Assembly (NCBI RefSeq): GCF_052425735.1 | Contig: NC_135762.1 | Span: 10,669,846-10,728,000, forward strand | Source of the DNA: Oculina patagonica | Taxonomy: Eukaryota | DNA length: 58,155 nucleotides | Direction of reading: 5' to 3' | Shown: piece after piece, positions 20,117 through 42,747 of the stretch | Numbering within the stretch: the first letter of the stretch is position 1 | Layout of the letters: the number at the start of each line of letters is the position of its first letter | Position numbers and translations under genes: made by a program | The notes under the pieces: generated by a model | What the model was told of the DNA's origin: nothing | Database searches by the model: none | Seen by the model: the letters and a program-made list of their open reading frames with translations, nothing else

Positions 20117-21240
20117 GGTGAATCAAGTCTACTTTCCACTGTCTAACAATTAATCAAATTTCACTTCTGGTAGAAATCTCTGATCCATTCCAGACGGACA
20201 AACACAGCGCAGACGTGCAGTGGAGACTATACATAGAACAAGTGATGTTACAGTTCAAAGGTAGTGACACATCGATTAAAATGAAATGTAAGTTGATCGG
20301 CCGGAACCAAAGAACGTGTTCATGATGAACACGTTCTTTTATGTGAAAAAAAAACAAACACTATAAATACTTCAGTTTCAACCGATTCTTTAAATTTTTT
20401 TGATCCTCTCGTCAACTTCGTCATTCAAATACTTTTTTAAAAAAGCTTTTGCTTTTTTATACCAAATATCAGATGAACGCCTAGTTTGGGTATCGTACCG
20501 GGAATAGTTTAAATAGTAATCATTTCAGTATTCGATCTTCCCTAGATTTTTCACGATTGTGCTAGCACTTAATTATATTTTAGTTTTATAAAACGAGACG
20601 TCGCGGCGATCCAATAAAGATAATAAAACCGACTAGAAATCAAACTGGCTGGCTACAAAATTGTTAATTCAGTTTTTTTCATTTTCACTAACGCAACAGT
20701 TTTCTTTGCCCTGAAAAACCAGAAATTCAGAGAGAGGATGTTTTAGGGTCACGTGGGGTGTTGGCGTGAGTTTCTTAAAATAATTTAGACACCGCCCCAC
20801 GTTTACAAGTCATACACGTGGGGTCAGTAACACAGAAAGTATTGGATTTGTGGTTTACATCAAAACGTTGTGGGTGTCTGACTAGACGCTAATAAATTAC
20901 AGTGGAATACAGACCCCTCTGTCTATTTATCTGGCTTCCAGGCTTCCTGAAATCTCTTAGAATTGAAGATTCTGCTCTCAGTCGTATTTCCTTTAAAGCC
21001 TAGTATAGTCGGTGGCTAGGCCCTTCCTGATTATGCTAGCATTTTTTCCGGAATATTTTGGCATTTTTGTCGCTTTTTCTCCAAAAAGAATTGCTAGCAC
21101 AATTCAGCATTTCCGCCATTTTAATCTAAGTTATTGTTGTCAAAAGCATAACTTTGGTTGTTTTTCAGTGGTGTTCTAACAATGCTAAAGACCTAAGGAA
21201 ACTTCAATTTTCCAAGCTCTCCACATAAATACTGTCTCTC

Positions 21241-24200
21241 CATACCAGTTCTGACTTGGAAGAAGGCCTAGCCGGTCAGCGGTTAACTTAAATTTTCGGG
21301 ATGTACTTCATGTATCCCTTATTATAGTGTATTCAGATTATAGTGTATTCAGATGGTTATTCCCCTTTATTTTCATGTATTCCCCTGTATTCTCCTGTAT
21401 TCTCATGTATTCCCCTATATTCTCATGTATTCCCCTGTATTCTCATGTATTCCCCTGCATTCTCATGTATTCCCCTGTTTTCCCCTGTATTCCCCTGTTT
21501 TCTCTTGTATTCCCCTGTATTCTCATGTATTCTCATGTATTCCCCTGTATTCTCCTGTATTCTCGTGTTTTCTCCTGTAATCCCCTGTATTCTCGTGTTT
21601 TCTCCTGTATTCCAATGTATTCCCATGTTTTTTCCTGTATTCTCTTGTATTCTCATGTATTCCCGTGTTTTCTCATGTATTCCCCTGTATTCTCCTGTAT
21701 TCTCCTGTATTCCCCTGTATTCCCATGTTTTCTCCTGTATTCCCCTGTATTCCCGTGTTTTCTCGTGTTTTCTCGTGTATTCTCCTGTATTCCCGTGTAT
21801 TCCCATGTATTCTCCTGTATTCTCCTGTTTTCTCCTGTATTCTCCTGTATTCTCATGTATTCCCCTATATTCTCATGTATTCCCCTGTATTCCCCTGTAT
21901 TCTCATGTATTCTCATGTATTCCCCTGTATTCTCATGTATTCCCCTGTTTTCCCCTGTATTCCCCTGTTTTCTCTTGTATTCCCCTGTATTCTCATGTAT
22001 TCTCATGTATTCCCCTGTATTCTCCTGTATTCCCGTGTTTTCTCCAGTAATCCCCTGTATTCTCGTGTTTTCTCCTGTATTCCAATGTATTCCCATGTTT
22101 TTTCCTGTATTCTCCTGTAGTCTCATGTATTCCCGTGTTTTCTCCTGTATTCCCCTGTAATTCTCCTTTATTCTCCTGTTTTCTCCTGTTTTCCCCTGTA
22201 TTCCCATGTTTTCTCCTGTATTCCCCTGTATTCTCGTGTTTCCTCGTGTTTTCTCATGTATTCTCCTGTATTCCCGTGTATTCCCATGTATTCTCCTGTA
22301 TTCTCCTGTATTCTCCAGTATTCTCATGTATTCCCTTGTATTCTCCTGTATTCCCGTGTTTTCTCCTGTATTCCCCTGTATTCTCGTGTTTTTTCGTGTT
22401 TTCTCCTGTATTCCAATGTATTCCCATGTTTCCTCCTGTATTCTCATGTATTCCCATGTTTTCTCCTGTATTCTCATGTATTCTGTATTCCCATGTTTTC
22501 TCTCGTATTCCCATGTTTTCTCCTGTATTCCCATGTTTTCTCCTGTATTCTCATGTATTCCCCTGTATTCTCCTGCATTCCCGTGTTTTCTCCTGTATTC
22601 CCCTGTATTCTCGTTTTTTTTCGTGTTTTCTCCTGTATTCCAATGTATTCACATGTTTCCTCCTGTATTCTCCTGTTTTCTCCTGTATTCCCCTGTATTC
22701 CCATGTTTTCTCCTGTATTCCCCTGTATTCTCGTGTTTTCTCGTGTTTTCTCCTGTATTCCAATGTATTCCCGTGTTTTCTCCTGTATTCCCCTGTATTC
22801 TTGTGTATTCTCGTGTTTTCTCCTGTATTCTCCTGTATTCTCATGTATTCCTCTGTATTCTCCTGTATTCCCGTGTTTTCTCCTGTATTCCCCTGTATTC
22901 TCGTGTTTTTTCGTGTTTTCTCCTGTATTCCAATGTATTCCCATGTTTCCTCCTGTATTCTCTTGTATTTCCATGTTTTCTCCTGTATTCTCATGTATTC
23001 CCCTGTATTCCCATGTTTTCTCTCGTATTCCCGTGTTTTCTCCTGTATTCCCTTGTATTCTGGTGTTTTCTCCTGTATTCTCCTGAATTCCTCTGTATTC
23101 TCCTGTATTCCCCTGTATTCTCATGTATTCCCCTGTATTCTCCTGTATTCTCCTGCATTCTCCTGTTTTCTCCTGTATTCCCCTGTATTCCCATGTTTTC
23201 TCCGGTATTCCCCTGTTTTCGCCTGTGTTCTACTGTATTTACCTGTATTCCCATTTTTTCACCTGTATTGTACTGCATTCCCCTGTACTCACCTGTATTC
23301 CTATGTTTTCGCCTGTATTCTCCTGTATTCTCCTGTATTTCCCTGTATTCCCATGTATTCCCATGTTTTCTCCTGTATTGCAATGTATTCTCATGTTTTC
23401 TCCTGTATTCTTTTGTATTCTTTTGTATTCTCTTGTATTCTCCTGTATTCCGCTGTATTCTTCTGTATTCTCCTGTATTCCCCTCTATTCCCATGGTTTC
23501 TCCTGTATTCCCCTGTATTCCCCAGTATTCCCATGTTTTCTCCTGTATTCCCCTGTTTTCAAATGTATTCTCTTGTTTTCTCCTGTTTTTCCCTGTATTC
23601 CCATGTTTTCTCCTGTATTCTCATGTATTCTCCTGTGTTCCCCTGTATTCTCCTATATTCTCCTATAAAACGAAGGACTCTGGGGACACAGCATTTTTAG
23701 TCCTAGATTCTATCACTTTCGGTCTTCATGTATGCAGTCATGACGCTTCACACAATAAAAAAATCTAATTAATTCAAAAATCCTATGTCCTTAGAGCCTT
23801 CGTTCCCTTGCAATTGTGCCAAGCCGGCTAAGAGAAACGAAAGGGCTATGGGGACGGTAGTCCAGTCCCTGAACTCTCTCTTCTGCGCGCCCTTTCCATG
23901 GGAAGTTGAAGACATCAAAAGCTCTAGAAATGCACTTACTGTTAACATCTGATAAAACATCGTTCAAGTAGAGAACCCTGTTTATGACATAGTTAAGTCA
24001 ATTTTCATATGTGAAGGTTACAATCTTTCATTTTTTTGAGTCCCAGCTCCTGCAGGAATTCCTGAACAACAGCCACTACGTACGTGATTTTTAATATTCG
24101 TTATAGCATTCTTACTTTCTTCTGAAAGGCAATAGTCCCATTTTTTAATGAACATATGTAAATTTGAATCTATAGTTTCAGGATCTAATGTTTCCATTTT

Positions 24201-24935
24201 TCTACATGATTCAAGATCGCCATTTGCACGGAATATAAGCCCAAATTCATTAGAGATTTGCTGTGAATGGCAGGAACCTTTTGGTATGGTTTTGACAAAG
24301 CGCTGGCATGCATGGAAAATGTCGAGCTTAACTGGAACGGCGGGAAAAACCCTGCGATACGATGGCCGTATGGCACAACAGTCATCCACCATAATCATGT
24401 TCAACTGTTGACCTCTCTTATCAAGCGAGGTTTTTAAATCCTGTAAAAGGTCCTCTACCTCCTTAAAAGCCGTGCTCCGAGTTAGCCTCCACGCCACAAC
24501 TTGACCATGTTCATTTAGGGCACTAAACAAATTTTCAAATTGATTTATAAAAGCATTGTCTGAGCTCCTTGCCACACCAATATGTTTGCTTACTTTAAAC
24601 GTGTGGTCACAAGTCAATATTGAGCATGGTATAGCTTCCATCTGGTTTTGATATGAGATTTCCATATTGTTAAAGAAAGATAGAAACATGTGCATAAGCT
24701 GGTCATTGCTAGGGAACGAATACAATTCCTTTTCATAAACTGATGTTTTTGAATCTGTACCTTCTTCGCTGTTGTGCACAAATGTCTTAAAGTTAATCGA
24801 TGCAATGTCCTCTGCAAGTTCCAAAAAGCTTTGTCCTCGTCCTATATGGGTTACAACATAGTCGATTAAATCTCGAGAAAACGCAGACAGATAAAATAGC
24901 TTGATAGGAAACTTCTTCTTTATTGCCGTTGGGAT
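21241..24935 (-). mobile_element. 5'-truncated Zisupton-like (KDZ superfamily) DNA transposon: transposase core plus terminal 10-bp array
   Basis: ORF segment ~24935-24018 has ILTCDHTFKVSKHIG, LNEHGQVVAWRLT, IMVDDCC, VKLDIFHACQRF and GTQKNERL, the motif order of Zisupton-type transposases as I recall them. The left boundary at 21241 (CATACCAG...CTTGG) is inferred only from resemblance to the terminus at 27569. Confidence 0.62.
21357..23666. repeat. 10-bp minisatellite array, consensus TGTATTC(T/C)CC, ~230 units
   Basis: Continuous 10-bp periodicity (tcccctgtat/tctcatgtat/tctcctgttt variants) with a few phase slips and a more degenerate right end. Confidence 0.97.
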
Positions 24936-25544
24936 GCTTTCGAAAACCAGTTGTGTGCTTTGAGTGTCGTAACTCTTAATGATCTGAAATCCCGCCGAGG
25001 AACAGTATTGCTCTACCTTGGCCCTCTCTTCCCATTGAACCATTTCACAAAGAAGCTCTGCAGTCTCTGGATTTAGCTCTTTGAAAGCGTTTAATGCAAA
25101 AGGATGAGGATGATCCCCGTACTGCGCGGCTATTTTCCCTCCACTTTTAAGACTTTCAAACATATTCTTGAAGACTTCTTCTTTGTCAGGGATCCAGTGC
25201 ATGACATGATTGCTAAAAATAATGTCGTACGACTCCAAGCCAATCCCTGGAAAGTTTGAAGCGCTTCCTTCCACAAATGAGAGATTCTTGATTTCACCGT
25301 GAGACTGCTGAGCCAGTAGAATTCGTTCCCTGTCAGGATCAACCCCCACAACCTTTCCCTCGGGTCCTACAAGCTCAGCGAGATATGCAGACAGCTCTCC
25401 TGTACCGCAGCCTAAATCCAAGATGGTGGCTCCGGGTTGAGGACAAACATCCGTTTGAATGAATATTATGCCTTCCATTTTTTGCACGGAGAGCGAAGTT
25501 TGTTTGTATCCCTCTGCTGGGCTATTGCTGGGCGAATTTGCCAT
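24018..25544 (-). CDS. Chimeric ORF (508 aa): class I SAM-dependent methyltransferase domain (~205 aa) fused in frame to a Zisupton-like transposase core
   Basis: The N-terminal part aligns with the intact methyltransferase at 41935-42747 up to ...TQLVF (motifs [28 protein letters not shown]), then switches at ~24935 to transposase-like sequence without a stop. Expression unknown. Confidence 0.7.
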   Translation of the reverse strand: MANSPSNSPAEGYKQTSLSVQKMEGIIFIQTDVCPQPGATILDLGCGTGELSAYLAELVGPEGKVVGVDPDRERILLAQQSHGEIKNLSFVEGSASNFPGIGLESYDIIFSNHVMHWIPDKEEVFKNMFESLKSGGKIAAQYGDHPHPFALNAFKELNPETAELLCEMVQWEERAKVEQYCSSAGFQIIKSYDTQSTQLVFESIPTAIKKKFPIKLFYLSAFSRDLIDYVVTHIGRGQSFLELAEDIASINFKTFVHNSEEGTDSKTSVYEKELYSFPSNDQLMHMFLSFFNNMEISYQNQMEAIPCSILTCDHTFKVSKHIGVARSSDNAFINQFENLFSALNEHGQVVAWRLTRSTAFKEVEDLLQDLKTSLDKRGQQLNMIMVDDCCAIRPSYRRVFPAVPVKLDIFHACQRFVKTIPKGSCHSQQISNEFGLIFRANGDLESCRKMETLDPETIDSNLHMFIKKWDYCLSEESKNAITNIKNHVRSGCCSGIPAGAGTQKNERL

Positions 25545-25737
25545 CTTTTCTTGCTCCAAACCAAAGCAAATATCTACAAACAACAAAGAGGTTTCATCGT
25601 TAGAATTCCTTTTACTTGATCAATCACTTTCTACGACGAATCAAAAACGTGAGCGAGTACTCTAATAATGATAGTAGCAACTTTATTCTTTCACACCAAA
25701 AATTATATCATATATTGTTTTGTATAACTAAATTAGT

Positions 25738-25900
25738 ATAGGTAATCGCATGATTTCGAGTGCAATTTGGGATAAATCAGCACGAGTAAATTTTTCAAAG
25801 GCTAACCAAATTGCACAAGCCCGTAGGGCGAGTGCAATTTGTAGTCTTTGAAAAATTTACGAGTGCTGATTTATCCCAAATTGTACGAGAAAAATCATGT
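25738..25900. mobile_element. Palindromic (hairpin) MITE-like insertion
   Basis: Long imperfect palindrome centred on GCCCGTAGGGC; absent from the homologous upstream region at ~48215-48240. Confidence 0.7.
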
Positions 25901-27718
25901 TTGTATGTATATTATTAGAAGGGAAACAATATAGTAAATGCTGAATTAAAACGAATGGTGGATACGAACCCAGGGGAGTAGCTATGTAGCCTATAGACCC
26001 GTAGGCCCGGGCCTACAACTGTTTTTCAGACTACTCGTATTTTTAAAATGTACCATCGAAAAATGCAAGCTGATGCACTTTCAAGATGAAATAGAAAGCA
26101 ATTTTTAAAACGTCTTAGCGTTGTAAATCTAACAACTCCCCTTTTTTGATGAGATCAAGGCTCATATAGCAAGTGCAAACTGTTAAGCTTCTGACTATGC
26201 AGGGGTTAGCCAGGTGACAGGCAAATGCACAACGGCGGTGAAGAAAGGTGCGTTTATTTACGAACGAGCAAAAATTGGCGCAATGCCTTCAAATGAAATG
26301 TTAGAATTTAGGAGCCGTTGAGCCACACACACAATCACCAAAAAGTCGAAAGTAAAAAAATATTTCCTAGGGTGTTAATCTCAAAACCTTCCCTGGTGGA
26401 CCTCCCCCCCCCCAAACCCCTCAAAAAGTGGTTGGCCAGGAAGCTGGCAACCCTCCTGGTACCAGAAGGTAACAGTTTGTTCGTTACTGTATCCAGGCAA
26501 CGCTTAGAAAACGAAGGAATAAATTTTTAAATTTTTAATACAATCAAGCATGTAAACTTTGGGGAAAGGTTGTTAAATGTATAGCCATAAGAGGCTGGAC
26601 GTTCAATGCTGATTTTAATGGGAAGTGGTTTTGTCAGCAACAAACCAAGCCAGAGTCGTACTTTTCTTAAAGAAGAGATATCCACGATGCAATCAGCATC
26701 ATATGTCAGTAGAACAGCTAATTGTCGATGGAAATATAAAGGCCGGTAACTTTGACAATGAAAGACAACTCCAGCTTCAAAGAAAGGCTGTTGCTAACAA
26801 CATCCTCATTTATTACTACTTTTCAAGCAGCAGACCTTCTTGTTGATGCAAGTAAAAAGCTGCAGAAAAAAGTCAGCAGCCTTGAAGTTTTGCAACGTTT
26901 CCAGCAGCTTTCACGCATATCAATGACACAACAATGTCATGATTCGATCATGATCAGAATGTCGGGATCAGAAGTTTTGTGCCGGTTTTTTTTTTAACTA
27001 AACCAAGAATGTTAAGTCTTGTCAAATGTGATCTCAGTCTCGAAGCCGGCACAAAGCAAGTACGCTAACATAAACGCGCTTCTAAAGATAAAACTCCACT
27101 AAAGATGCACGTCGATCGCTTATGCAGGGTATCTTTTGTAACCTAAACGCACGCTGGTAATGTGAAATTGGGAGCAAAACTGAATACATACTAGCTGGGC
27201 AAGACGAACGACGAGTGGCCGCACCAGACTGTTCTTTCTTATCGTTATCGGGCTGCGTTTATTTCACTACAAACGCATACTGAAGAGATTTGTTTTCCTT
27301 TCACGACTAACAGACAGGCCGGAAACAAATCAGGCAAAAGAAGCCAGTGAACTAAATTCCGATAATGAATCGAATCAACTTTCAACTTTCTACGTACAAA
27401 ACGTTCTGCTTAGTTCAGACTAATTTTAAACCCGCCCTCACTTACCTTATGGAAATTTTAACCAGATATTATCCCAGACTGTAAACTTGACCAACACTCG
27501 TTTATCGGTCTGCGCAGTTCTAATTAATTATTCCATGGCATCCTGTTTTGATCTTCAGTGAAAAAGAGTATACCATGCACGATTTAGGATGCACATTTTA
27601 AGGGTCTTTTTCTGTAACAGTGTTACGTGTTACACGAGACTACACGCATGCGCTTGTATAATGTATGTTGTTTAAATTTGCGCACGCATGTTTTACATGA
27701 AAATCTAATGTAACAAGG

Positions 27719-29531
27719 AGTTACAAGGTGTTACAGGGAGTTACAAGGTCTTACAGGGAGTTACAAGGTCTTACAAGGTCTTACAGGGTGTTACAGGGTG
27801 TTACGGGGTGTTACAAGTTGTTACAGGGTGTTACAGGGTGTTAAAAGGTGTTACAAGGTGTTACAGGGTGTTACAAGGTGTTACAGGGTGTTACAGGGTG
27901 TTACAAGGTGTTACAGGGTGTTACAGGGTGTTTCAGGGTGTTACAGGGTGTTACAAGGTGTTACAGGGTGTTACAAGGTGTTACAAGGGGTTACAAGGTG
28001 TTACAAGGTGTTACAGGGTGTTACAAGGTGTTACAGGGTGTTACAAGGTGTTACAGGGTGTTACAAGTTGTTACAAGTTGTTACAAGGTGTTACAAGGTG
28101 TTACACGGTGTTACAAGGTGTTACAGGGTGTTACAAGGTGTTACAAGGTGTTACAAGGTGTTACAAGGTGTTACAAGGTGTTACAGGGTGTTACAAGGTG
28201 TTACAAGGTGTTACAGGGTGTTACAGGGTGTTACAAGGTGTTACAAGGTGTTACAAGGTGTTACAGGGTGTTACAAGGTGTTACAGGGTGCTACAGGGTG
28301 TTACAGGGTGTTACAAGTTGTTACAAGGTGTTACAAGGTGTTACAGGGTGTTACAAGGTGTTACAAGGTGTTACAGGGTGTTACAAGGTGTTACAGGGTG
28401 TTACAAGGTGTTACAAGGTGTTACAGGGTGTTACAGGGTGTTACAGGGTGTTACAAGGTGTTACAAGGTGTTACAGGGTGTTACAAGGTGTTACAGGGTG
28501 TTACAAGGTGTTACAAGTTGTTACAAGGTGTTACAAGGTGTTACAGGGTGTTACAAGGTGTTACAAGGTGTTACAGGGTGTTACAAGGTGTTACAAGGTG
28601 TTACAGGGTGTTACAAGGTGTTACAAGGTGTTACAGGGTGTTACAAGGTGTTACAGGGTGTTACAGGGTGTTACAGGGTGTTACAGGGTGTTACAAGTTG
28701 TTACAAGGTGTTACAAGGTGTTACAGGGTGTTACAAGGTGTTACAAGGTGTTACAAGGTGTTACAGGGTGTTACAAGGTGTTACAGGGTGTTACAAGGTG
28801 TTAGAAGGTGTTACAGGGTGTTACAGGGTGTTACAGGGTGTTACAGGGTGTTACAAGGTGTTACAAGGTGTTACAGGGTGTTACAAGGTGTTACAGGGTG
28901 TTACAAGGTGTTACAAGTTGTTACAAGGTGTTACAAGGTGTTACAGGGTGTTACAAGGTGTTACAGGGTGTTACAAGGTGTTACAAGGTGTTACAGGGTG
29001 TTACAAGGTGTTACAAGGTGTTACAAGGTGTTACAGGGTGTTACAAGGTGTTACAGGGTGTTACAAGGTGTTACAAGTTGTTACAAGTTGTTACAAGGTG
29101 TTACAAGGTGTTACAGGGTGTTACAAGGTGTTACAAAGTGTTACAGGGTGTTACAAGGTGTTACAGGGTGTTACAAGGTGTTACAAGGTGTTACAAGGTG
29201 TTACAAGGTGTTACAGGGTGTTACAAGGTGTTACAAGGTGTTACAGGGTGTTACAAGGTGTTACAAGGTGTTACAGGGTGTTACAGGGTGTTACAAGGTG
29301 TTACAAGGTGTTACAGGGTGTTACAAGGTGTTACAGGGTGTTACAAGTTGTTACAAGTTGTTACAAGGTGTTACAGGGTGTTACAAGGTGTTACAGGGTG
29401 TTACAAGGTGTTACAGGGTGTTACAAGGTGTTACAAGGTGTTACAAGGTGTTACAAGGTGTTACAGGGTGTTACAAGGTGTTACAGGGTGTTACAAGGTG
29501 TTACAAGGTGTTACAGGGTGTTACAAGGTGT
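27719..29531. repeat. 10-bp minisatellite array TGTTACA(A/G)GG, ~180 units, inside the transposon
   Basis: Near-perfect tandem ttacaaggtg/ttacagggtg with rare ttacaagttg variants and no phase slips. Confidence 0.98.
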
Positions 29532-29989
29532 ATTATTCCTCCTTTTACTGTATGCTGTGTTGAAACAATTATAAAGAAATTATTTTGTTGTTGTTACAAG
29601 TTTTAATTTTGCTGAAAAGTATGGTGTATTTTTTCCTCTTTTTTTGCTCTTCTTTTTTTGCTCTTTTATACTTTTAATTTACAAGACCCCACGAGCTTGT
29701 CAGCTTTTATCTACATCGTGTTTAATAAAGACAACGTACTTACTTTTTTACTGTATGTTGTGTTCAAGCAATTAGAAAGGAAATATTTTTTTACTTTGTT
29801 TTACAAATTGTTATCCCATTCATATTTATGACATTTTTTGTCCCATTCCCAGCGACCAGTGGCGTAAGTCCCAAAACTAAATGTTTTATTCCTGTGTGGT
29901 CTTACGACAACTCTTGATTGGGTCTCTGGGTAATGTCAATGTCAAAATCCTTTTAGCAAAATATTCCTAAACAAAACTTAACTTATAAA

Positions 29990-30545
29990 CTTTGTTTATC
30001 AATTTACTTGTGCGGGATGTAACTCCCGTTATATTGGCGAGACTTCCCGTCATTTTTCAACAAGGATCAAAGAGCATACTTTAACTGATAAAAATTCACA
30101 TGTTTTTAAACACCTTAACAGTTCATCTAATTGCAAAAATTTATACACACTTGATTGTTTTAAAATTTTGGATTCTGCTAAAACCGTTTATTTTCTTAAA
30201 TTAAAAGAGGCTTTTTACATTAAAAGTTTAAAACCAGATTTAAACACTCAAGTGCAGCATGTTAACACCTTTTTATTATAATCTTTTGTTCTATTAGTAA
30301 CGGTCTAAAGCTCACACTGTGAGTAATTACTGTTCTAGACAGTACCAGACAGTACCTGCCACTTTGTAACGACTTTACCGTTATCTTTTGTTGTTGTAAT
30401 TTTACGTTGTATACAATTCTATTTTTGTAATTTTAGCTTGGGTATATACATAGCCCTAGATTTTTAAATTCTCAATAAACTGAAGATGGCATGAGTGACA
30501 TGCCGAAACATGTCTTTAAAAGGTTGTTTCATGTTTTTAAAATTA
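29990..30545 (+). mobile_element. 5'-truncated Penelope-like retroelement (GIY-YIG endonuclease end plus 3' region) nested in the KDZ element
   Basis: 29994-30281 translates VYQFTCAGCNSRYIGETSRHFSTRIKEH...SHVFKHL...FKILDSA...LKLKEAFYIKSLKPDLNTQ...*, a Penelope-type GIY-YIG domain with its Cys/His pattern. It is followed by a hammerhead motif. Confidence 0.85.
30475..30519 (+). ncRNA. Minimal type I hammerhead ribozyme (Penelope-associated)
   Basis: ATAAA-CTGAAGA-T-GGCATG-AGTGA-CATGCC-GAA-ACATGT-C-TTTAA: CUGANGA and GAAA core, 6-bp stem II, palindromic ACAUGU stem III, GUC cleavage triplet. Confidence 0.78.
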
Positions 30546-30609
30546 GTAAGGATAAAGCAAAGACAAACATCCGCCGTCAAAAAGCATCTCTTATCTGATT
30601 GCATTGTTC

Positions 30610-31038
30610 CCCGGGGGGGGGGGGTACTCCCATATGTGGCCTATATAGGTATGTGCCGCCCGATAGGGTATGGTTTTTGAGGTTCTCGGTCCTTAAATAG
30701 GGTATCATTTTTGCTCCTTTTGGCAATGTGTTCCCGGTGTGATCCTTAGATAGGGTACCTAAATTCTATTAGCTAAAATAAACGCCCAGCTAAACGAAAA
30801 ATTTTCTGTTCAGGTATTAGAAAAGCGATTTTATAAAGATTTGTCTTGCTGTGCGCGGTTAGCCGTTATTTGGGTCGTCACGGAACGCTTCTCCTCCCCT
30901 TAAATAGGGTGCCATTTTTCGGTTTTGGGCCTTAAAAAGGGTATCAATTTTCGCTTCCTTTATCCTTAAATAGGGTCAGGGTTTAAGAACCTTGGCGGCA
31001 CACCCCTATCCAAAATTTATGCGAGTACCCCCCCCGGG
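30610..31038. mobile_element. MITE with CCCGGG(G)nTACTC TIRs nested in the KDZ element
   Basis: CCCGGGGGGGGGGGGTACTC ... GAGTACCCCCCCCGGG; internal CCTTAAATAGGGT repeats; ATTGTTC present on both flanks. Confidence 0.75.
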
Positions 31039-31563
31039 AATTGTTCACTCGTTCTTACGAGTACACCAGACACGTATCAACGTCTTCTTTTGTTGCTTCA
31101 CCAATAAAAAAAGGTCCAGATTCTTAATTGGTTGCAGGCGGATAGACAAGTAATCGTATCAAAAAAACCAGACCCGATAGAAGATTAGATAAGGCGTTCC
31201 ACGTGTAATCTACATGCGTATATGTGTACTATTTTGCTTATTGACCAATCAGAGAAAATGTCCAGATTCTTTGTTGGTTTAAGCTGGTGATTATGTCAGG
31301 CGCCCAACTTCTGCCGCGAAAAAAAGGAGGACTGATTGGAGATTAGATAATAATATATAAGGGACTCTGTAAAGTGCAGAAACGGACGGCGGATCGCGGA
31401 CGGCGGACGGCAAAAAAAAAAAAAATAAATAAATAAAAATAAAAAATTTAAAAAATAAAAAATAAATAAAAATATCAAAATTATTTTTTCTCAAAGGGTT
31501 CGGGCAAGATTCTCCTATCTCTATCCACAGGCCACGGTAAAACGTGAAAACTGCATGACTTTT

Positions 31564-34500
31564 TTAATATGAATTATGTTGTTTAGCACCACGGACTTTA
31601 GGGAGCACTGGCTTCCTTCCTTTCTTATAACACAGTTCAGTGTAACGGTTTCTTCGCACACACATTCGGTGGAGATAAAAGAGATGATGACACTTATCCA
31701 TGGCACAAAGTATCTTCTTGAAACGACCCAACCATACAAATACTTGTTCAGCAGCCATGGTGTTTAAGTCAGGGTGTTTCTCTTTGAGTTCTTTAAGCTT
31801 TTCACCATAATTTGTCTTACAGGATTCCCTTTTATGATTTTTTATGTGAAGGCTGTCTATGATTTTAGTCACCTTAGACCACAGATCATCATAGGGACTA
31901 GGAAGAGGAAGTTTTCCACGGGATGCCTTAAGCTGGTCCAGATTACACATGTTGTCATAAGAGAGTACGACTTCTTCCCATTGCTCAGGGGGCACATCTT
32001 TAAGAGTGTTGTACAAAAACCTAAGTGTTATTAGAAACACTTGGGAAGGTGATTCTGACCTAAAAGATAATATTTAAAATGTTTAAAAATTAAGTAACTC
32101 AGAATTTCAGTGTTACATTGACACATCTTTCTAAGTTTGTATTTTTCTTGACATTTCAACTGATTGTCAAAACAAAACCAAAATTACAGTAAGGGTAAAA
32201 CATATAATAGACATTTAAGTAATGTTTGCACTCAGTCTACATGCTAATAAAGTTGAAGTTTTGTTATGTTATGTTGTGTATTTGATATGTTTGTCGTGCA
32301 TGCAATTAAGGAAAACATTATTGCACTCTTGAGTTGAAAATAGAATAAGTATCAAAAACGTTTTGCGTTAGCAGTTTGGTAATAATAATATCTTACTTAA
32401 ACAATGGCTGCCAAGTTGCAATATGACCTCCTCCACTAACAATAAAGCAGTGACCCTTAGACCACTTTCTCAGGGACTTCTTTCCTCCTGTGTCTTTGTT
32501 GCAGGGATCTTCAAGTGGCAAAGTTTCTAAACTAGGAAGCAGTTCTTTGTTGAATCCTGTAAACTCTTCAAGTCCTTTAGAAATACAGACAACTTATGTT
32601 AAAATAAAACAAAAATATATAACATAGTGTTTGAGCCATTAATTAAAAATGCTTAACAATTAAAACTGTGCAAATTCATTCTATGACATAACCATAAATT
32701 AAAGTAAGAATTTGTGATGTCAAATTATCTAATACTTAACGTTAAAGATTGCTGGAATTGTAATGAGCTTAACAGGAAAAGAATTAAATATAGCTTCAAC
32801 AAAATATTCAAGTAATATTGTTTTAAGTGATTTTATGTACTCAACAGCTAGTGGGACACATGGCAACAGCTATCATGAGGGTTTGTGCACATTGAGATTT
32901 CATATCAATTTACTCATATTGCAATTACCTTGGGCACTAACTGAAGATAAACCTAAATCACTTCCTTGCAATTTGTTCACAGTCTCATCAACAAAGTGAA
33001 CCTGGTCGCTATTCTCACCGCTGTCATCAGGGTCATGTACAATTGGTGCATTGGTTCCTCCTTTTTTAAAAAAAAAACAAAAAAAAAAAAAACAAAACAA
33101 AAACAGAACAATAAATTGTAAAAGTTATGTTTTGGAATTTCATTTGGTGTTTTTGGTCTATAGAATACCTTAAAATTCTGTTTATAAGCCCCCTGTTAAA
33201 AGGCCCTCCAATAGAGGAAGACGGTACTGAACAGGGCTAACTTTTGATTGGATTACATGTTTTAAACTTTGAAACATCAATAATTATGGCTGATCAACAC
33301 TACAATGGCTTGCTTCGAAACACTTTTTGCATTCCACTTATATGCACCAACCCAGGTTATGACCCAAATTTTACTCTTCATCACTAGAGAAATTCTTTAT
33401 TTATACAAATGGCTGCATGAGATATTACCACTGTCAATAAATACTTGGAGTATTACAGAACATGCAAGGCATTATTATAATGAGCTTTCACATGATAAAT
33501 TGGTGTGAAGTCAGAAACCACATACATACTGGCTGAAAATAGCTTGTTAAATCAAACTGAACCACATGGATATTTTCCTACCTTGCTTTGAGCAGTATTC
33601 AAGAAATTCTTTCAGGTCAGTGGGGATTCCCTGCTCAGACAGATTACTACAGTGGGTCTTGCAGAAGGCCTTCCCTCTTTCAGGTGTGGCTTCACATATG
33701 TCTGGATAATTGACCATAGGCAAGCTTGGGATTGCATTTTTAACCTTGTACATGCAGTGGGGGAATCTCAACTTCCAGTTACCATCAATCACCCAAAGTT
33801 TTCCACAACCTGCAGATACATATTTAATAATTATTACTCATCACAATTAATTAATTATTAAGTACTAAAAACAATTCATTTCTCAATATTAGTTATCCTC
33901 AACCAATTACGGCGCGTGAAAGAACGGCCCTGTTAAAAAGCCAATCAGAGGTTAAAATGCGGGGGGGCCGGAACAAGCTTTTTTGCCGCAATTTGCAGAC
34001 GGACTATACCGGGGTTTTGTTCGTCTGCAACGCAGGCTAAACATTAGTCACAATTGTACATTTTTCACTTTTTCATCACTTGAAAATAAAAAAGTTTATT
34101 TCAATAAATTATATTACCTCTCTTTTTACAGTCCTCTGTACAATTATGTATGTAAGTTGAAACCCTCCTCCTCTCTTCAATGCCATCCATCAGTTGTTCT
34201 CTGTCAGCATCCTTGTACATGGGAAAATCTTTTAATGGAGAGCCACTCTCTCTTAATGAATTCTCTAACTCACCCCACCAGAACATGTCGGCCACACACT
34301 TTGCAGACAGTTCTCTTTGTGAACAGCCTGAATGAAAAAAATTTGCATTGTGTTACATACTTATTACTTGAGGTAAAAAAATCAAGAAAACTTGAAAATT
34401 AACATTGCTGATCAGAGGGGAATCTAATACTCAATTACTTTTAGTTTTTTTCTGGTAAATGCTGTGATAATTTCTCATAAACCATGACTCAGTTTAACAT

Positions 34501-36457
34501 GTACAGACAAATACATGAAAATGAAATTCTTTCTTTGAGGGTGGTGGACAAAACACTGGAGATCAAGTATTACAGCAATACATTAATTTCTCACTTGGAA
34601 TATTATTTTAGGGTACCTTAATTTTGAAAATTAACAACACTTGTTATTAACATGAAATTTTAAAAGTTTTCATTAGTTTTATTTTATTACTCATAAATTT
34701 TGTTCAAATTAAAATGGTTTTTATATCCCTTTAATAAGATAGTCTATTATAGAGGTAAAATCCATTGAAGGCAGTTTATTTATCTTTAGATGCTCAGAGG
34801 TGAATAGTACTTTGCTATATATAATCACCTCTGAGTTAACCAATCAGCGCACACATAAAGCACTATTCACTTGTGTGGTATATACTAAATTATAATAATT
34901 ATTGATAAAATTCAGGATTCCTAACTTGAATTTGAAAAAAAAAATGAATAAGAAAGTAATAAAATCACAAACTAGTAAAAGAAAAATAACCTAAGAAAAA
35001 AAAGAGAAATAAACCGAGATAGGTAGATGAATAACTAGATCAATCTGATCGTTTAATCAAAACCAAATCTAGCAGCTTAATTAAAGTTCAATTATTTGAA
35101 TGTGTTCATAAGTGAAGCAATTACTTAATTATAAATATTCACTTGCCTTCTTTTCTCCTCATCCACTCACTATATCCCTCAGCAAAAGCTTCAAATGAGA
35201 GCCATCCGTGATTTCTATTTTAAATGGTTAGTAAACATTATACAAAATTGTTATTGATATATCTTAGTTGGAACCATTTAACAAACAGACATCGAAACTG
35301 GTTTATTGGGCCTCCCCACCACGACAAGGTGGACTCTTATAGGGGAGGGAAGAAACAGCAAATAAGAAGAGATACATTCAATTTCCTATCAGTGACAGCT
35401 GCAGTGATGGCCGAGTTTCTTACAAACGTACTAACTTAGCGTAAAAATAACTCACACAACTAGATGTTTTTAAAAACAAGAGTCCCTTGGCAATAAACCA
35501 GTTTATGAAATATATATATATTAGATAATTCTAATTCAGAAAATATTAAAAGAAATAATCTTACTTACGCAAGAGAACAGTACAATTCAAAAAGTTCACG
35601 ATCTACAAGTGTGGAGTCAGTTGCCTCGACTGTATCTCTGATCGTGTCGTAAAACTGGTATCCACTCTCCTTGTTTCCAAAGCGAGAGTAAGAGAAATTC
35701 AAACGGCATTTATTGCACCGCAAAGTAATTTTTTTGCCTGCAAAAGAATAATATTAAAACATTGGCTGCAATCCTTGTGAAAAAGAAATAATTAAAATTC
35801 TACTGGTTTTTTGAAACAGTGTTAAACGACGAAGCATATGGCACTTTTACGACACAATTATATGAAAGTTGTGAGGATCTAGGCAGAATAATGATAACTT
35901 ATAGCGGTATTGTACATAAATGAAAAATGTACAAAATAAAAATTATAAAAAAGTATAGATCACAATAAAATTTTTATTAAGCTATATGGTTTGAAAACAG
36001 CCATACTACCAAAAGGGACCCCAACAATCAATATTAAAATTAAGCTTACTACACTTTAAAACAAAAAGTATTATTACATTACCTGCAAAGGAACCTTTGA
36101 ATCCAAAGAACACAACGTCGCTAGGATCATTGTGGCGCGATAAATTTCCGCCACACTGAAGACATCGGCTTGTTGGAGGCCCAAAGCAACGCTGATCCTT
36201 TCCGGATGATTGGGAAAGATGATCTGCCAACAAAATAGCGTTTGGCAGATCTTCGACATCCTTCAGAGCAGGGAACAGTTCCTCTATTATCTCCAACCGA
36301 TTCGTGGAGAATAAAAGAAGAACCGTTGACACCGCTTGCCTGAGGATGTCGAACTTATGAAGGCCGAACTTGGAGATTAGAAATACAGAAATCTGATCTT
36401 CAGAAAGGCAAGGTGTTAAAGATCGCTTAGTCTGTGACGAGCTCTCTTGCCAGCCAT
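31564..36457 (-). pseudogene. 8-exon CxC5/CxC6-like + KDZ (Kyakuja-type) transposase, ~618 aa, with one apparent frameshift near the start
   Basis: Phase-consistent exons 36457-36083, 35737-35569, 35214-35147 (GC donor), 34327-34118, 33809-33582, 33060-32929, 32574-32397, 32059-31564. Motifs: RCLQC...LRCNKC...YSRF, LSFEAFAEGY, HNCTEDC..GC..WVIDGNWK...C...FCKTH, CNKDTG, SESPSQV, LSYDNMCNL, IIDSLHIKNH, LNTMAAEQVFVWL. caagATGGCT at 36457 meets TAA after 13 codons; adding 1 nt restores the frame. Confidence 0.8.
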
Positions 36458-36679
36458 CTTGATATTGTGCAAACTTGATCCAGTCCTCTACTGACCGTGT
36501 AACACTGGTAACAGTTGTAACAGTGTTACATAAAAGTGATACCAGATCTCTGACCCTAAATCGGGCAGCATGTGAAAAAGAGCACTGAACCAGTTCACTC
36601 AGTTGAATTTGCATTATGTTTTTTTATAACGTGCGAATAAATAAAAAATAAGCCAGGTTCTCGAGTATGATGCTCAGTC

Positions 36680-39600
36680 CTGTTTTGTCTTCGCTTCATT
36701 TTGGGATTCTACTCTCCATTTGATATTACCTTTTATCATTTAAACATCAGTATATACCCGGGTACATATTATTATCCTAACATGTGAATTAATTAAAAAT
36801 AAGCCTGGTTCTCGAGTATGATACTCAGTCCAGATTTGTCATCGCTTCAGTTTGGGTTTCTACTCTCCGTTTGATCAGATTATCTTTGAAAAACCATCTA
36901 GTAAATGTCATATACTTGCTGATGGCGTGTTTCATTCTGGATTTCGCAACGACCCTAAGGACAAATGCTATTTTCGGAAATGATCATTATTGTCTTATGA
37001 GTCCTTATGGATGACTGCGAAACACAATACATACATTTGTCGTCAAAGTGACCTCCTGACCACAAATATCACTTGAAGATTAGTAAAAAAAAAAAACGTT
37101 GGATGCAGAGGACCACGCAACGAAGAATAAAAATAGGCTTGTCTGTTGCCGGATCTCTTGCTCAAGAAATGCTTATACCAGACGTCACTCTAAATGTAAA
37201 TAAACCAAATCGATTGCAAGGCTGATACTACGGCAAAAGGGCATAATATTTTTGGCCAATATTGCAACTAGCAGAGCAAGTCTTCCTTACAAACGTATCA
37301 GTTTTATTTGCCCTGAAAAATTAGGACTTTTAAGAGAAGATTTGTAAGGGTATCGGGTGAAATTCTTCAAATAATTGAACCCCCCCCCCCCCCCACCCAC
37401 GTTTGCAAGTCATGTCTGACTTCGAACAAGGACCGTGGAATACAGACCCCTCGGCGTTTTAATTCCTACGGCTAAGATTATTTCTAATACTCCTGGATGA
37501 GATGCCAGCTGGTCCATCGATCAGTACACTGTTCTCGTGTTTGAAGAAAATACGCGAATTTAAAGGGCTGTGAACAGTCTAGCCCCTCAGCGTTATTAAA
37601 CATTGGTTGCCCGCCTACACGTTAGTACCCGGGCCATTTCTACTCCTTGGTGGAGAGAAGCACTGAGCTGAGGGAGAAACTTCCTTCAAAAGACAATAAT
37701 TATCATTTCTGAAAATAGCATTTGTCCCTAAGGTCGTTGAAAAATACAGAATAAACCACGCCATCAACAAGTTTGTGAAATCCACTAGATGAATCTTCAA
37801 AGGTAATATCAAACGGAGAGTAGAAATTAACCCAAACTAAACTGAGCAGTAACAATACTGGACCAGGCATCATCCTCGAGAATCCAGCTCTCAATTCGTA
37901 AGTCACTTACCGCTAGAGCGCCTTCTTCCCGTCGAAACCGGAACCGCAAAATTGCAAACATGACGGCAAAGCGGTGGTTACGTGACCTCCTCAGGTTCGC
38001 CGTTTGCCGTGCACATGCACATATTTAGGAACTTCGAGCCGCCATTTTGTTTTCAACTTCTTTTGCCACTCGGTTTTTTTAGTTTTAGATCATGTAAAAT
38101 ACATTGTTTTTTAATCACAAAAAACCGACATTTGGATCCATAAAAGGTAATTTTTTCACTAGAGCACCTTCTTCCCGTCGAAACCGGAACCGCAAAATTG
38201 CAAACGTGACGGCAAAGCGGTGGTCACGTGACTTCCTCAGGTTCGCCGTTTGCAGTAAACGTGATACTAAAAGTGCCTATTTAACCGTGCCTATTAAACA
38301 TCGTTCGGTGTAGTAATAAATCAGAACTGCACAGGCCGATCAAAAGAGTAGTGGAGAGTAGAGTCCGGAATAATATATTTTATACGAGGTAAGTCAGGGC
38401 CGGGCTTAAAATCAGTGCTTTTATTGTTTCGAGGTGTTTGGGACCCCTGATGAAAACCAGGCACGATCTTTTGATATGGCTTCTCAAACTTGTGTGGCAA
38501 TTTACTGTTTAGGAACAATAGTTCGTTATAAGGCGCACTCAGTGGGCGATTGTTTGTTTGGTATTCAACTGGCAAATGAAATGAATATTTGATATACGGC
38601 GATCCTGGTGAGTAAAGTTGGAGTTTTTTTTAAGAAATTTACATAACCCGCGTGGTGGAGTTCGAGTCCGGATCAGGACGATTTCGCGTTCCCAAATCGC
38701 CTTCTGAAGAAAAGGTTTCGGTGAATGACGCGTTCCAGTTTTAGCTAAGTACAGCAACGAGTAGGCTGTGAACATTTTTGTCGAATAGCTGATGTTAAGA
38801 GAGGGTAAAGTTCCGGCGAGTTCGCGTTCGATAAACTGGCTGTGCCCGTAGACATCGACAGCTTAAAGCCTGGTTTTCATATGTCGGGAAAATCCCAGAC
38901 GATCGGGGATTTCACTGTTTCCTGACCGTCCCAGACTTTGCCGACTAATGAAAACTCGAAATCTTAGATATCCCCGATCGTCTGGGATGGTCGGGGACAA
39001 ATCTGGAGAATCGGGAGCGTTTCTATTCTCCCGACGGGTCCCAGATTTCTGCGATGGTCGGCGATCGTTTTGTCTTCGCTTCATTTTGGGTTTCTACTCT
39101 CATTTGATATTACCTTTCATCATTATACGGGTACATTTTATTATCCTAACATGTGAATTAATTAACAACAAGCCTGGTTCTCGAGTATGCTACTCAGTCC
39201 AGATTTGTCATCGCTTCAGTTTGGGTTTCTACTCTCTGTTTGATCAGATTATCTTTGAAGAACCATCTAGTGAATGTCATATACTTGCTGATGGCGTGCT
39301 ACATTCTGGATTTCGCAACGACCCTAAGGACAAATGCTATTTTCAGAAATGATGATTATAATCTTATGGGTCTTAATGGATGGCTGCGAAACACAATACA
39401 TACATTTGTCGTCAAAGTGACCTCCTGACCACAAATATTACTTGAAGATTAGTAAAAAAAAAACCGTTGGATGCAGAGGACCACGCAACGAAGAATAAAA
39501 CTACTTGGCTTGTCTGTTGCCGGATCTCTTGCTCAAGAAATGCTCATACCAGACGTCACTCTAAATGTAAATAAACCAAATCGATTGCAGGGCTGATACT

Positions 39601-41295
39601 ACGGCAGAAGGGCATAATTTTTTTAGCCAATATTGCAACTAGCAAAGCAAGTCTTCCTTACAAACGTATCAGTTTTATTTGCCCTGAAAAATTAGGACTT
39701 TTAAGAGAAGATTTGTAAGGGTATTGGGTGAAATTCTTCAAATAGTTTGAACCCCCCCCGCCACCCACGTTTGCAAGTCATGTCTGACTTCGAACAAGGA
39801 CCGTGGAATACAGACCCCTCGGCGTTTTAATTCCTACGGCTAAGATTATTTCTACTACTCCAGGATGAGATGCGAGCTAGTTCATCGGTCAGTACACTGT
39901 TCTTGCGTTTGAAGAAAATACGCGAATTTAAAGGGCTGTGAACAGTCTAGCCCCTCAGCGTTATTAAACATTGGTTGGCCGCCTACACGTTAGTACCCGG
40001 GCCATTTCTACTCCTTGGTGGAGAGAAGCACTGAGCTGAGGGAGTAGCTTCCTTCAAAAGACAATAATTATCATTTCTGAAAATAGCATTTGTCCCTAAG
40101 GTCGTTGAAAAGTACAGAATAAACCACGCCATCAACAAGTTTGTAAAATCCACTAGATGAATCTTCAAAGGTAATATCAAACGGAGAGTAGAAATTAACC
40201 CAAACTGAACTGAGCAGTAACAATACTGGACCAGGCATCATCCTCGAGAATCCAGCTCTCAATTCGTAAGTCACTTGCCGCTAGAGCACCTTCTTCCCAT
40301 CGAAACCGGAACCGCAAAATTGCAAACGTGACGGCAAAGCGGTGGTTACGTGACCTCCTCAGGTTCGCCGTTTGCCGTGCACATGCACATATTTAGGAAC
40401 TTCGAGCCGCCATTTTGTTTTCAACTTCTTTTGCCACTCGGTTTTTTTAGTTTTAGATCATGTAAAATACATTGTTTTTTAATCACAAAAAAACGACATT
40501 TGGATCCATAAAAGGTAGAAAATTCTTACTTAAAGTGTCAAACGTGAGTTGGTTTCGTTAAGCGGCGAAAAAAATTTCCCGTAAGTCACAAGAGCACCTT
40601 CTTCCCGTCGAAACCGGAACCGCAAAATTGCAAACGTGACGGGAAAGCGGTGGTCACGTGACTTCCTCAGGTTCGCCGTTTGCCGTAAACGTGATACTAA
40701 AAGTGCCAATTTAACCGTGCCTATTAAACATCGTTCGGTGTAGTAATAAATCAGAACTGCACAGGCCGATCAAAAGAGTAGTGGAGAGTAGAGTCCGGAA
40801 TAATATATTTTATACGAGGTAAGTCAGGGCCGGGCTTAAAATCAGTGCTTTTATTGTTTCGAGGTGTTTGGGACCCCTGATGAAAACCAGGCACGAACTT
40901 TTGATATGGCTTCTCAAACTTGTGTGGCAATTTACTGTTTAGGAACAATAGTTTGTTATAAGGCGCACTCAGTGAGCGATTGTTTCTTTGGTATTCAACT
41001 GGTAAATGAAATGAATATTTAATATACGGCGATCCTGGTGAGTAAAGTTGGAGTTTTTTTTAAGAAATTTACATAACCTGCGTGGTGGAGTTCGAGTCCG
41101 GATCAGGACGATTTCGCGTTCCCAAATCGCCTTCTGAAGAAAAGGTTTCGGCGAATGACGCGTTTCAGTTTTAGCTAAGTACAGCAACGAGTAGGCTGTG
41201 AACATTTTTGCCGAATAGCTGATGTTAAGAGAGGGTAAAGTTCCGGCGAGTTCGCGTTCGATAAACTGGCTGTGCCCGTAGACATCGATAGCTTA
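36680..41295. repeat. Direct tandem duplication of a ~2.2-2.4-kb non-coding unit (copies ~36680-38866 and ~39068-41295)
   Basis: Near-identical blocks offset by ~2370-2430 bp (e.g. 37615/39983, 38539/40969). Both units are mirrored in the right arm (~52705-57070). Confidence 0.9.
38867..39067. mobile_element. Truncated MITE (AGCCTGGTTTTCATATG terminus) at the tandem-duplication junction; mirrored at ~54620-54821
   Basis: Starts after TAA; internal CCCAGACGATCGGGGAT / CCCCGATCGTCTGGG inverted motifs; second terminus missing; absent at the equivalent end of unit 2 (41291 GCTTAA|ATAAGG). Confidence 0.65.
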
Positions 41296-41934
41296 AATAA
41301 GGTCTTGCTTGAAATGTGCTAGCGGCAGGTTTTCATCGCAAAACTGCTCTTAGTCTGTGTTACTTGTTTTTCCTCCCTGTTCAATACTGGGATTAAAGAT
41401 AAATTTATACGCATAAGGGATGTTGTTTTCAAGAAGGGAATTAAAAAATTCAAAAACTGCACAATCAATGTAACGGTGTCTGTCAGAGAAGGACAGACAT
41501 TAAGGAATAACATGTTGCTGCGTTGTTGTTGTTGTAATTAATGAGTCAAGCGGAAAAAAATGCTGTAATTAGCATAAATATAAATACAAATTAAAATTCA
41601 AGTTTCTTAATCAGTTTCTTGATCAGTTTTAGAAGTTATCGAACGTGTCTTAATCGGTATGTTCATTGGGTATCAACATTTTGAAAGTCATTAAAACGAC
41701 GAGCCCAACTAACATACTGACAAGAGCAGGCGTTTTTCGGGTATTTCATCAAGGAACTTAAAACTGTATTATTTCTTGACCGATGAAAATTTCTCTCCTG
41801 ACAAAATAAGTTCTCAAATGATCAGAAATTCTCGATCGCTTAAAATATTTCTACACCGATTGGAAATCTTGACTGATTAAATTTTCTCTTTCTCGTTGTT
41901 TGTAGATATTTGCTTTGGGTTGGAGCAAGAAAAG

Positions 41935-42747
41935 ATGGCAAATTCGTCCAGCAATAACACAGCAGAGGGATACAAACACAACTCGCCTTTGATGCAAAAG
42001 GCGGACGGAGAAATATTCATTCAAACGGATGTTTGTCCTCAAGCAGGAGACGCCATCTTGGATTTAGGTTGCGGTACAGGAGAGCTGTCTGCATATCTGG
42101 CTGAGCTTGTAGGACCCGAGGGAAAAGTTGTGGGTGTTGATCCTGACAAGGAACGAATTCTACTGGCTCAGCAGTCTCACGGTGAAATCAAGAATCTCTC
42201 ATTCGTGGAAGGGAGCGCTTCAAACTTCCCAGGGATTGGCTCGGAGTCATACGACTTTATTTTCAGTAATTACGTCATTCACTGGATCCCTGACAAAGAA
42301 GAAGTCTTCAAGAATATGTTTGAAAGTCTTAAAAGTGGAGGGAAAGTATGCATTCAATATGGTGATCATATGTTTCCTTTTTTAGCAAGTGCTTTCGAGG
42401 AACTCAACCCCGAGACTTCAAATGAATGTTTTGCGATGTATCATTTTGAGGAGAGGGCCAAGATTGAACAATACTGTTCCACCGCGGGATTTCAGATCAT
42501 TAAGAGTTCCAACACGCTAAGCACACAACTGGTCTTCCCAACCACCGAGAGCCTTCTGCACTGGATTTGGTCGACAACACATGGTGTCTTTAAGCCCAAG
42601 CTGGTAACCGAGGAGCGTTTGCAGAGATATTACTCGTACTCAAGCAGAAGCGGTAAGCCACCTTTCGACTTCAGAGGAAACAAAGAAGAATCTCCAGTTT
42701 GTCAACTGATAACTGTTAAGCAAGCAAGAGACAAATCCACCCCATAA
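41935..42747 (+). CDS. Class I SAM-dependent methyltransferase (small-molecule type), intact, 270 aa
   Basis: Single coding exon with motif [10 protein letters not shown], post-I VVGVDPD, motif II YDFIFSNYVIHW, motif III LKSGG. A polypyrimidine tract plus TAG acceptor at 41905 precedes aagATGG at 41935. Substrate unknown. Confidence 0.88.
   Translation: MANSSSNNTAEGYKHNSPLMQKADGEIFIQTDVCPQAGDAILDLGCGTGELSAYLAELVGPEGKVVGVDPDKERILLAQQSHGEIKNLSFVEGSASNFPGIGSESYDFIFSNYVIHWIPDKEEVFKNMFESLKSGGKVCIQYGDHMFPFLASAFEELNPETSNECFAMYHFEERAKIEQYCSTAGFQIIKSSNTLSTQLVFPTTESLLHWIWSTTHGVFKPKLVTEERLQRYYSYSSRSGKPPFDFRGNKEESPVCQLITVKQARDKSTP

Follow-up and report, generated by a model that had tools for sequence, protein, structure and literature searches.

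Short-unit tandem arrays inside two DNA transposons of the coral Oculina patagonica

Two arrays in one window

The stretch analyzed here, hereafter the window, comprises 58,155 bp of the Oculina patagonica genome (RefSeq assembly GCF_052425735.1, contig NC_135762.1, positions 10,669,846 to 10,728,000 of the forward strand) and is numbered from its own first base. It holds two transposable elements, element 1 (21298-24946) and element 2 (27569-36574), each of which contains a tandem array of about 2 kb made of 10-bp units. In element 1, array 1 (21358..23664, + strand) is followed by a repeat resembling a miniature inverted-repeat transposable element (MITE; 23667..23856) and by a transposase fragment (24018..24946, - strand), beyond which, outside the transposon, lie the 5' two-thirds of a SAM-methyltransferase paralog (24947..25586, - strand). 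In element 2, array 2 (27709..29531, + strand) is followed by a non-coding spacer (29532..31540, + strand) and by a multi-exon transposase gene, putatively of KDZ type, whose 3' end is turned toward the array (31567..36572, - strand). The two arrays, and the minus-strand transposase remnants to the right of each, had been picked out in a first-pass annotation, and these observations stand. In both families, the array lies inside a mobile unit bounded by target-site duplications (TSDs), derives from the element's own end motif, is family-specific, changes copy number rapidly, and is compatible with transposition.

Tandem Repeats Finder, run on the window, resolved array 1 into ~230 copies of a base unit TGTATTCYCC with ~78-80% matches and array 2 into ~182 copies of TGTTACARGG with ~91-93% matches. 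Both keep to a strict 10-bp period: 181/204 spacings between TGT[AT]T anchors in array 1 and 167/174 spacings between GTTAC anchors in array 2 equaled 10. The most frequent units were TGTATTCCCC, TGTTTTCTCC, and TGTATTCTCC in array 1 and TGTTACAAGG and TGTTACAGGG in array 2, and strand asymmetry was strong in both arrays. Open frames of 277-602 codons run out of the arrays in several reading frames (21327-23768; 27798-29606), encoding, for example, a repeating GVTRCYKVLQ; these long frames are artefacts of the repeats, which automatic annotation is likely to call as spurious genes, and the arrays themselves break short-read assemblies. That both units begin with TGT had been read as a likeness between them, yet this start is uninformative because a tandem unit can be written in any phase and some shared 3-mer is present in 78% of shuffled units. 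Similarly, a candidate core common to the two units (YCCTGTA, on opposite strands, with a best circular match of 7/10) was rejected as being at chance level, 12% of shuffles equaling it.

Boundaries and contents of the two elements

The limits of element 2 are exact. A genome search with 27520-27710 returned five further copies at 96-98% identity, all of which have 27569 as their exact first base and unrelated sequence to its left, in agreement with the terminus first proposed at that position; the family extends to 36574, where the right end is common to the copies. The same 8-bp sequence, AAAAAGAG, flanks the element as left and right TSD copies (27561..27568 and 36575..36582), and the copy on contig 9 is flanked by an 8-bp TSD of its own (two copies of TTGTTTTA). 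Moreover, the window itself contains two empty paralogous sites, at 57169-57176 and 46961-46968; AAAAAGAG is present there in one copy per site, and at both of them the flanks of the element (26583-27568 and 36575-38149) are joined directly. Given the duplication and the empty sites, the 9,006 bp of element 2, array included, represent a single precise insertion that duplicated 8 bp.

The two ends of element 2, at 27569..27708 (+; beginning TATACCATGCACGATTTAGG) and 36435..36574 (+; its counterpart ending in CCTAAATCGGGCAGCATGTG), form an imperfect terminal inverted repeat (TIR; CATGC..CGATTTAGG). Both are rich in a single short motif: GTTAC/GTAAC occurs three times in the first 140 bp and four times in the last 140 bp, versus 0.18 expected from the density in internal, non-array sequence. 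Array 2 is this same GTTAC end motif in head-to-tail form, and in every copy (all 6 sequenced left ends) it starts exactly 140 bp inside the terminus, with array lengths of 1054, 1173, 1574, 1823, and 1883 bp across copies. A relative on contig 4 that is 81-85% identical has only ~5 units (TGTAACAYCC) at the same position, and a relative on contig 7 (59% identical in its last exon) has ~80 degenerate CAGTAACT units, split between two inverted blocks that lie 1.2-1.8 kb past the exon. The element 2 clade is thus characterized by a phased cluster of the end motif, located in the stretch that separates the left end from the gene's 3' end; the size of this cluster is highly labile.

The transposase gene of element 2 is represented by exon-like open frames on the minus strand at 36009-36572, 35568-35753, 34104-34352, 33550-33837, 32396-32593, and 31567-32073. 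For the last of these, the match to the Pfam KDZ profile (PF18758) scored 18.4 bits (E 0.0018), short of the 26.6 cut-off; searched one by one, the remaining exons gave no KDZ match. D..D motifs (VIDGNWK and SYDNMC) are visible in the exons. A census of the genome with the Pfam KDZ profile gave only 5 matches, the genes being intron-split, and no comparable array was seen at those loci, which span 3 kb and have flanks too short for the absence to be informative. Copies of element 2 also differ in the spacer and around the last exon. The window copy keeps the region of the last KDZ exon (31541-32392), and two copies on contig 1210 have the exon itself (98% and 83% amino acid identity); three copies at 98% (contigs 9, 12, and 13) have unrelated sequence, beginning CGCTTTCGTGAG, at 31540. 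An insertion of ~420 bp at 30613-31039 is private to the window copy.

For element 1, the left terminus had been placed at 21241..21259 (+), a position that lies inside an older, unrelated dispersed repeat (~21150-21290). The window sequence 21150-21289 matches many loci at 74-84%, and all of these matches end near 21289; young array-bearing copies (97-98%) begin only at 21298. The terminus of element 1 is therefore 21298, with the tip GGKATGTACTTCAT, and 21241 is not a terminus. With it falls the YATACCA start that the two elements had been thought to share, their real termini being unlike. The true left terminus and its 60-bp leader (21298..21357, +) consist of the TIR tip GGGATGTACTTCATGTAT, which is present only once in the window (family consensus GGTATGTAC...), and two copies of ATTATAGTGTATTCAG, which hold the array core TGTATTC and lead directly into array 1. 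A TGTATTC array follows the leader in 6/7 of those sequenced.

What the element 1 family looks like when complete is seen in a copy at C5:28896-35026, in which a perfect 8-bp TSD (GCAGTTTA, 8/8) abuts the tip and inverted arrays of 1.15 and 2.4 kb occupy both arms (1.3 and 2.5 kb of a total of 6.1 kb). In a twin on contig 4 (98%), arrays of 4.2 and at least 8.5 kb, within arms of 4.6 and >8.5 kb, surround the MITE and the transposase fragment that are also found in the window. Array 1 corresponds to the left arm of such a foldback-type element, the inverted right arm of which is missing from the window. Leaders and arrays of element 1 also occur in clusters within 50-150 kb, in both orientations (C3:27065091-27216794, C1:18228420-18281841, and C13:16332314-16386561), and these may be satellite-like accumulation zones of the family. 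As a separate observation, GGTCAGCGGT (or CAGCGGT) is located 14-30 bp outside the terminus in 5/7 sequenced insertion flanks of the element 1 clade (window 21274-21283, the right flank of the contig 14 element described below, and others); this may reflect a target preference for a particular repeat, or the flanks may be members of one repeat family.

The coding part of element 1 is equally incomplete. The segment 24018-24935 encodes 305 amino acids (aa) that match ~residues 153-455 of full-length relatives of 797-852 aa, proteins with DUF6729, MULE-like DDE, and OTU regions. Because only these residues are covered, position 24018, previously taken for the 3' end of the transposase, is an internal truncation and no natural 3' end. 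The fragment has neither the N-terminal DUF6729 region nor the C-terminal OTU protease domain, and it ends right after a conserved GTxxNERL motif. Similarity to the copies on contigs 4 and 5 ends at 24946, and at 24946/24947 the first ~213 codons of the methyltransferase paralog are joined in frame to transposase residues ~153-455, giving a fusion that spans 24018-25586 (-). Contigs from two other samples (X3 and X5) leave the window sequence at 24946 / 24933 and represent the two parental forms, transposase and methyltransferase, separately; no X3 or X5 contig bridges the chimera junction. Of the sequenced pieces listed, none spans 27568/27569, the left boundary of element 2. The window copy of element 1 is thus a remnant consisting of the left arm and an internal piece only. 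The MITE-like repeat that lies between array 1 and the transposase fragment has an internal inverted-repeat structure and is very abundant, with 1,710 first-look candidates in the genome and 108 scored matches. Intact methyltransferase paralogs of 283 aa lie at 41896-42747 (+) and 51261-52112 (-); they are paired within a large inverted local duplication of the methyltransferase region in 38600-58155, centered on a 500-N assembly gap (46368-46867), as are 43845-43995 and 49707-49857.

Some of these features would suit a chance juxtaposition, in which ordinary satellites happened to lie beside decayed transposase genes: the units of array 1 are found at no fewer than 12 genomic loci and form arrays of at least 8.5 kb, and element 1 in the window is a broken remnant. 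However, the distance from terminus to array is fixed in all copies, and the arrays lie within TSD-bounded units. The empty sites, which are without the whole 9-kb unit, refute chance for element 2, as the TSD-bounded copy on contig 5 does for element 1, and we accord this explanation a negligible probability. The view of the first-pass annotation that the arrays are not chance microsatellites is accordingly upheld, as they lie inside mobile elements, are family-specific, and recur beside related transposases.

Arrays among relatives of element 1

Relatives of the element 1 transposase were used to gauge how general the design is. All named protein relatives are cnidarian. Within the O. patagonica genome, a family on contig 14 (47% identity) looks intact, with a first open reading frame (ORF1) of 846 aa (DUF6729, a weak MULE-like core, and OTU) and a second (ORF2) of 251 aa. 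Its TIR tips are perfect over >100 bp and start GGTAGGTACTTCATATAT, of which the GGTAGGTACTTCAT start is common with element 1 of the window. Its arms, 1.7 and 3.0 kb of 12.45 kb, carry inverted arrays of 1.6 and 2.9 kb built from an 18-bp unit (TTACTTGAGGTGCTTGGG), which the leader (GTACTTGAG / TTACTCGAGA) resembles, and its flanks (TGTCCCGG / TGTCCAGG) match as a TSD at 7/8 positions. The second gene, located downstream of the transposase in full-length elements on both contig 12 and contig 14 (251-261 aa), encodes an MSL2-type CXC zinc domain (30.5 and 36.5 bits against MSL2-CXC PF16682, cut-off 26.7); in one Clytia protein (P0070), transposase and CXC domain form a single fused polypeptide. 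In the family on contig 12 (51%), an array of CCTACATAGC at least 2.5 kb long lies 3.5 kb upstream, with no array within 5.5 kb downstream, and a truncated copy on contig 3 has a TGAACGGRGG array upstream. Three further families had no array within 1.5 kb.

A scan extended the comparison to 80 coral metagenome contigs with element 1-clade transposase relatives, as a descriptive count without an enrichment control. Arrays of at least 150 bp were carried by 14/80 contigs, with periods of 8, 9, 17, 20, 27, 28, 36, and 40; 6 arrays lay upstream and 9 downstream of the gene. The array runs to the contig end in 9 of the 14, as is expected where arrays break short-read assemblies. In one contig, L063, a 58%-identical transposase is enclosed by inverted 17-bp arrays, one at each contig end. 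Family-specific arrays therefore recur with the element 1-clade transposase, and both the period (8 to ~40 bp) and the side of the gene on which they stand are variable.

These relatives bear directly on the proposal of the first-pass annotation that KDZ elements share a general, conserved architecture, running from a YATACCA terminus through a 10-bp array to the 3' end of the transposase. In its support, 8-bp TSDs are found in both elements, the base period is 10 bp in 4/6 arrays of the O. patagonica genome, and a motif cluster lies between the left end and the gene 3' end in three families of the element 2 clade. Nonetheless, 21241 is wrong as a terminus, the real termini are unlike, and 24018 is an internal truncation. 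The period is not conserved, as 8, 9, 17, 18, 20, 27, and 28 bp also occur (8-40 bp overall); arrays in the element 1 clade, instead of standing next to the gene's 3' end, occupy both inverted arms (contigs 14, 4, and 5 and L063) or lie upstream (contigs 12 and 3); some full-length relatives have no array within 5 kb; and 0/38 aligned element 1-clade members match KDZ PF18758 at E<0.01. We regard such an architecture, which the copies examined contradict, as very unlikely. Of the broader idea, a general system of transposases and cognate arrays, one part survives in that related families have arrays of their own (CCTACATAGC, TGAACGGRGG, the 18-mer, and those of the 14/80 contigs); a fixed period or side does not, and some relatives are without arrays. 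The idea had also been staked on relatives of the 24018-24935 transposase carrying the TGTATTC array: the full-length ones lack TGTATTC, but several carry different arrays of their own.

Origin of the arrays and comparison with known systems

The explanation that we favor, and consider likely, is that the window contains two unrelated cut-and-paste DNA transposons, each array being an expansion of the element's own short subterminal motif. Element 2 would be a complete, young KDZ-type element in which a motif present three to four times per end was amplified on the left side only, from ~5 copies, as in its relative, to 105-190. Element 1 would represent a foldback-type element reduced to its left arm plus one internal fragment, its right part having been lost in the rearrangement that fused the remnant to the methyltransferase paralog. 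Intact relatives of element 1 encode a DUF6729 / DDE / OTU transposase and a CXC protein between TIRs composed of the tip GGTAKGTACTTCAT, a leader, and kilobases of the unit, with the two arms inverted. The units may serve as binding sites for the element's own DNA-binding domains, either a zinc-finger-like N terminus of the transposase or the CXC protein, and the arrays might grow by slippage or unequal exchange. In the 10-bp families, one unit per helical turn would place the sites on one face of the DNA.

The main rival holds that the arrays are neutral or mildly harmful minisatellites, seeded by subterminal repeats and grown by slippage, with no role in transposition. This is a possible account, if a somewhat doubtful one. 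It fits the copy number of units, which spans ~5 to ~190 in close relatives and 105 to 188 in copies that are 96-98% identical, as well as the unequal lengths of paired arms (1.15 versus 2.4, 1.6 versus 2.9, and 4.2 versus >8.5 kb), the degeneracy of array 1 (78%), and the existence of some intact relatives without arrays. It is opposed by the finding that amplification of a family's own end motif took place in independent families of two unrelated clades, as well as in other genomes, which argues for a shared cause tied to the ends; by the elements with kilobase arms that have still transposed with clean TSDs; and by the precedent of Galileo, in which repeats of this kind bind the transposase (PMC4079207).

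Several findings weigh against the explanation by two transposons with expanded end motifs. In view of the range of ~5 to ~190 units among close relatives and of an array-free full-length relative, long arrays are dispensable for the clade. In that relative, from a family on contig 1 with an 842-aa ORF (C1:21.8 Mb), both flanks are free of arrays over 5 kb. The TGTATTC family yielded no autonomous copy, the best candidate being a 412-aa frame. Finally, the KDZ assignment of element 2 is a qualified one, drawn from a sub-threshold Pfam match and the length of the TSD.

A host function has also been considered, namely that the arrays serve silencing, as a source or target of small RNAs or as sites of heterochromatin nucleation that tame the elements. 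No direct support for this was obtained, and inverted kilobase arms could give hairpin RNA if transcribed; one small-RNA run yielded no reads whatever over the sequence next to the arrays, an outcome that carries no weight either way. We think a silencing role quite improbable. A more far-reaching suggestion, which we offer tentatively and consider rather unlikely as a whole, is that a cnidarian-wide, unclassified two-gene lineage (DUF6729 / DDE / OTU plus CXC, with an 8-bp TSD) is the autonomous source of the foldback-type elements, that their arms are phased recognition units read by the CXC protein or the transposase N terminus, and that KDZ elements converged on the design independently. 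If true, it would provide a tractable natural set of transposase / cognate-array pairs with which to ask why transposons multiply binding sites.

For annotation, the correct boundaries are 21298 for the start of element 1 and 27569-36574 for element 2. More broadly, this coral genome contains several related transposase families with short-unit arrays of their own, including at least one apparently intact autonomous foldback-type element, a scarce kind, and it records, for a cnidarian, satellite-like arrays of several kilobases that were seeded by transposon ends. An old question thereby becomes testable, namely whether repeated end motifs are extra binding sites that aid transposition or products of slippage.

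As for classification, no profile similarity was detected between the element 1 clade and the element 2 exons, and the two elements, described as unrelated from the outset, appear so at the sensitivity used. In addition to the 38 aligned members, neither the window fragment nor three full-length relatives matched the KDZ profile. MULE PF10551 matched the element 1 clade at E 0.004-0.13 and 13-18 bits, below the cut-off of 27.6, and reached E<0.01 in 1/38 members. The label KDZ or Zisupton-like is thus not established for element 1. Two points might favor it by analogy, the 8-bp duplication and the CXC-domain partner gene, given that Zisupton has 8-bp TSDs (PMC12730594) and that KDZ transposases are linked with CxC cysteine clusters (PMC12062965). 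The 8-bp TSD is a likeness common to element 2 (AAAAAGAG and TTGTTTTA) and the element 1 family (GCAGTTTA), and element 2 further resembles Zisupton/KDZ elements in its multi-exon transposase gene (PMC9297572). A possible further likeness, in the element 1 clade, is the CXC domain linked with the transposase, as ORF2 matches MSL2-CXC above the cut-off and may correspond to the KDZ-linked CxC1-7 families. In contrast to KDZ elements proper, element 2 is below the KDZ cut-off, with one matching exon, and the element 1 clade is without a match. A literature search, from which the original Zisupton paper was absent, returned no description of kilobase short-unit arrays in KDZ/Zisupton elements, and it likewise returned none of foldback elements in cnidarians.

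The closest counterparts of element 1 are the foldback elements, represented by Drosophila FB, Tetris, and Galileo. Foldback arms consist of an outer domain and tandem repeats, for which the terminal domain is often the source; in Tetris, with TSDs of 8-10 bp, a portion of the outer domain gave rise to the repeats, and these have seeded kilobase satellite arrays; the tandem repeats of Galileo hold additional transposase-binding sites; and most foldback elements have been assigned to Mutator, with exceptions (PMC4079207). Element 1 and its relatives on contigs 14, 4, and 5 and on L063 show all of the likenesses that can be listed: long TIR arms made of an outer tip and tandem repeats from the terminal domain, repeat numbers that vary between copies and between arms, satellite-like seeding, and mostly non-autonomous copies. 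Inverted arms, end-derived repeats, and a TSD at the tips are all present in the element 1 family, of which the window copy retains the left arm only. It differs from known foldback elements in its very short units (10, 17, or 18 bp in the clade) within arms of >8 kb, in the existence of an apparently intact autonomous relative (that on contig 14, with its 846-aa ORF1 and CXC ORF2), and in a DUF6729 / DDE / OTU transposase with weak, sub-threshold MULE similarity, for which membership in Mutator or P is not established. Element 2 differs from the foldback design in being one-armed, with an array on the left side only.

For element 2, the nearer comparison is with CACTA/En-Spm, Ac/Ds, and similar elements, in which a short motif bound by the transposase is repeated inside both ends in both orientations, usually as ~6-20 dispersed copies. 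The GTTAC/GTAAC motifs at both ends of element 2 fit this pattern; what sets it apart is that one side has grown into a perfect head-to-tail array of ~180 units. The architecture seen in the window is, then, the known foldback / subterminal-repeat design, to which these elements add a new example and no new principle.

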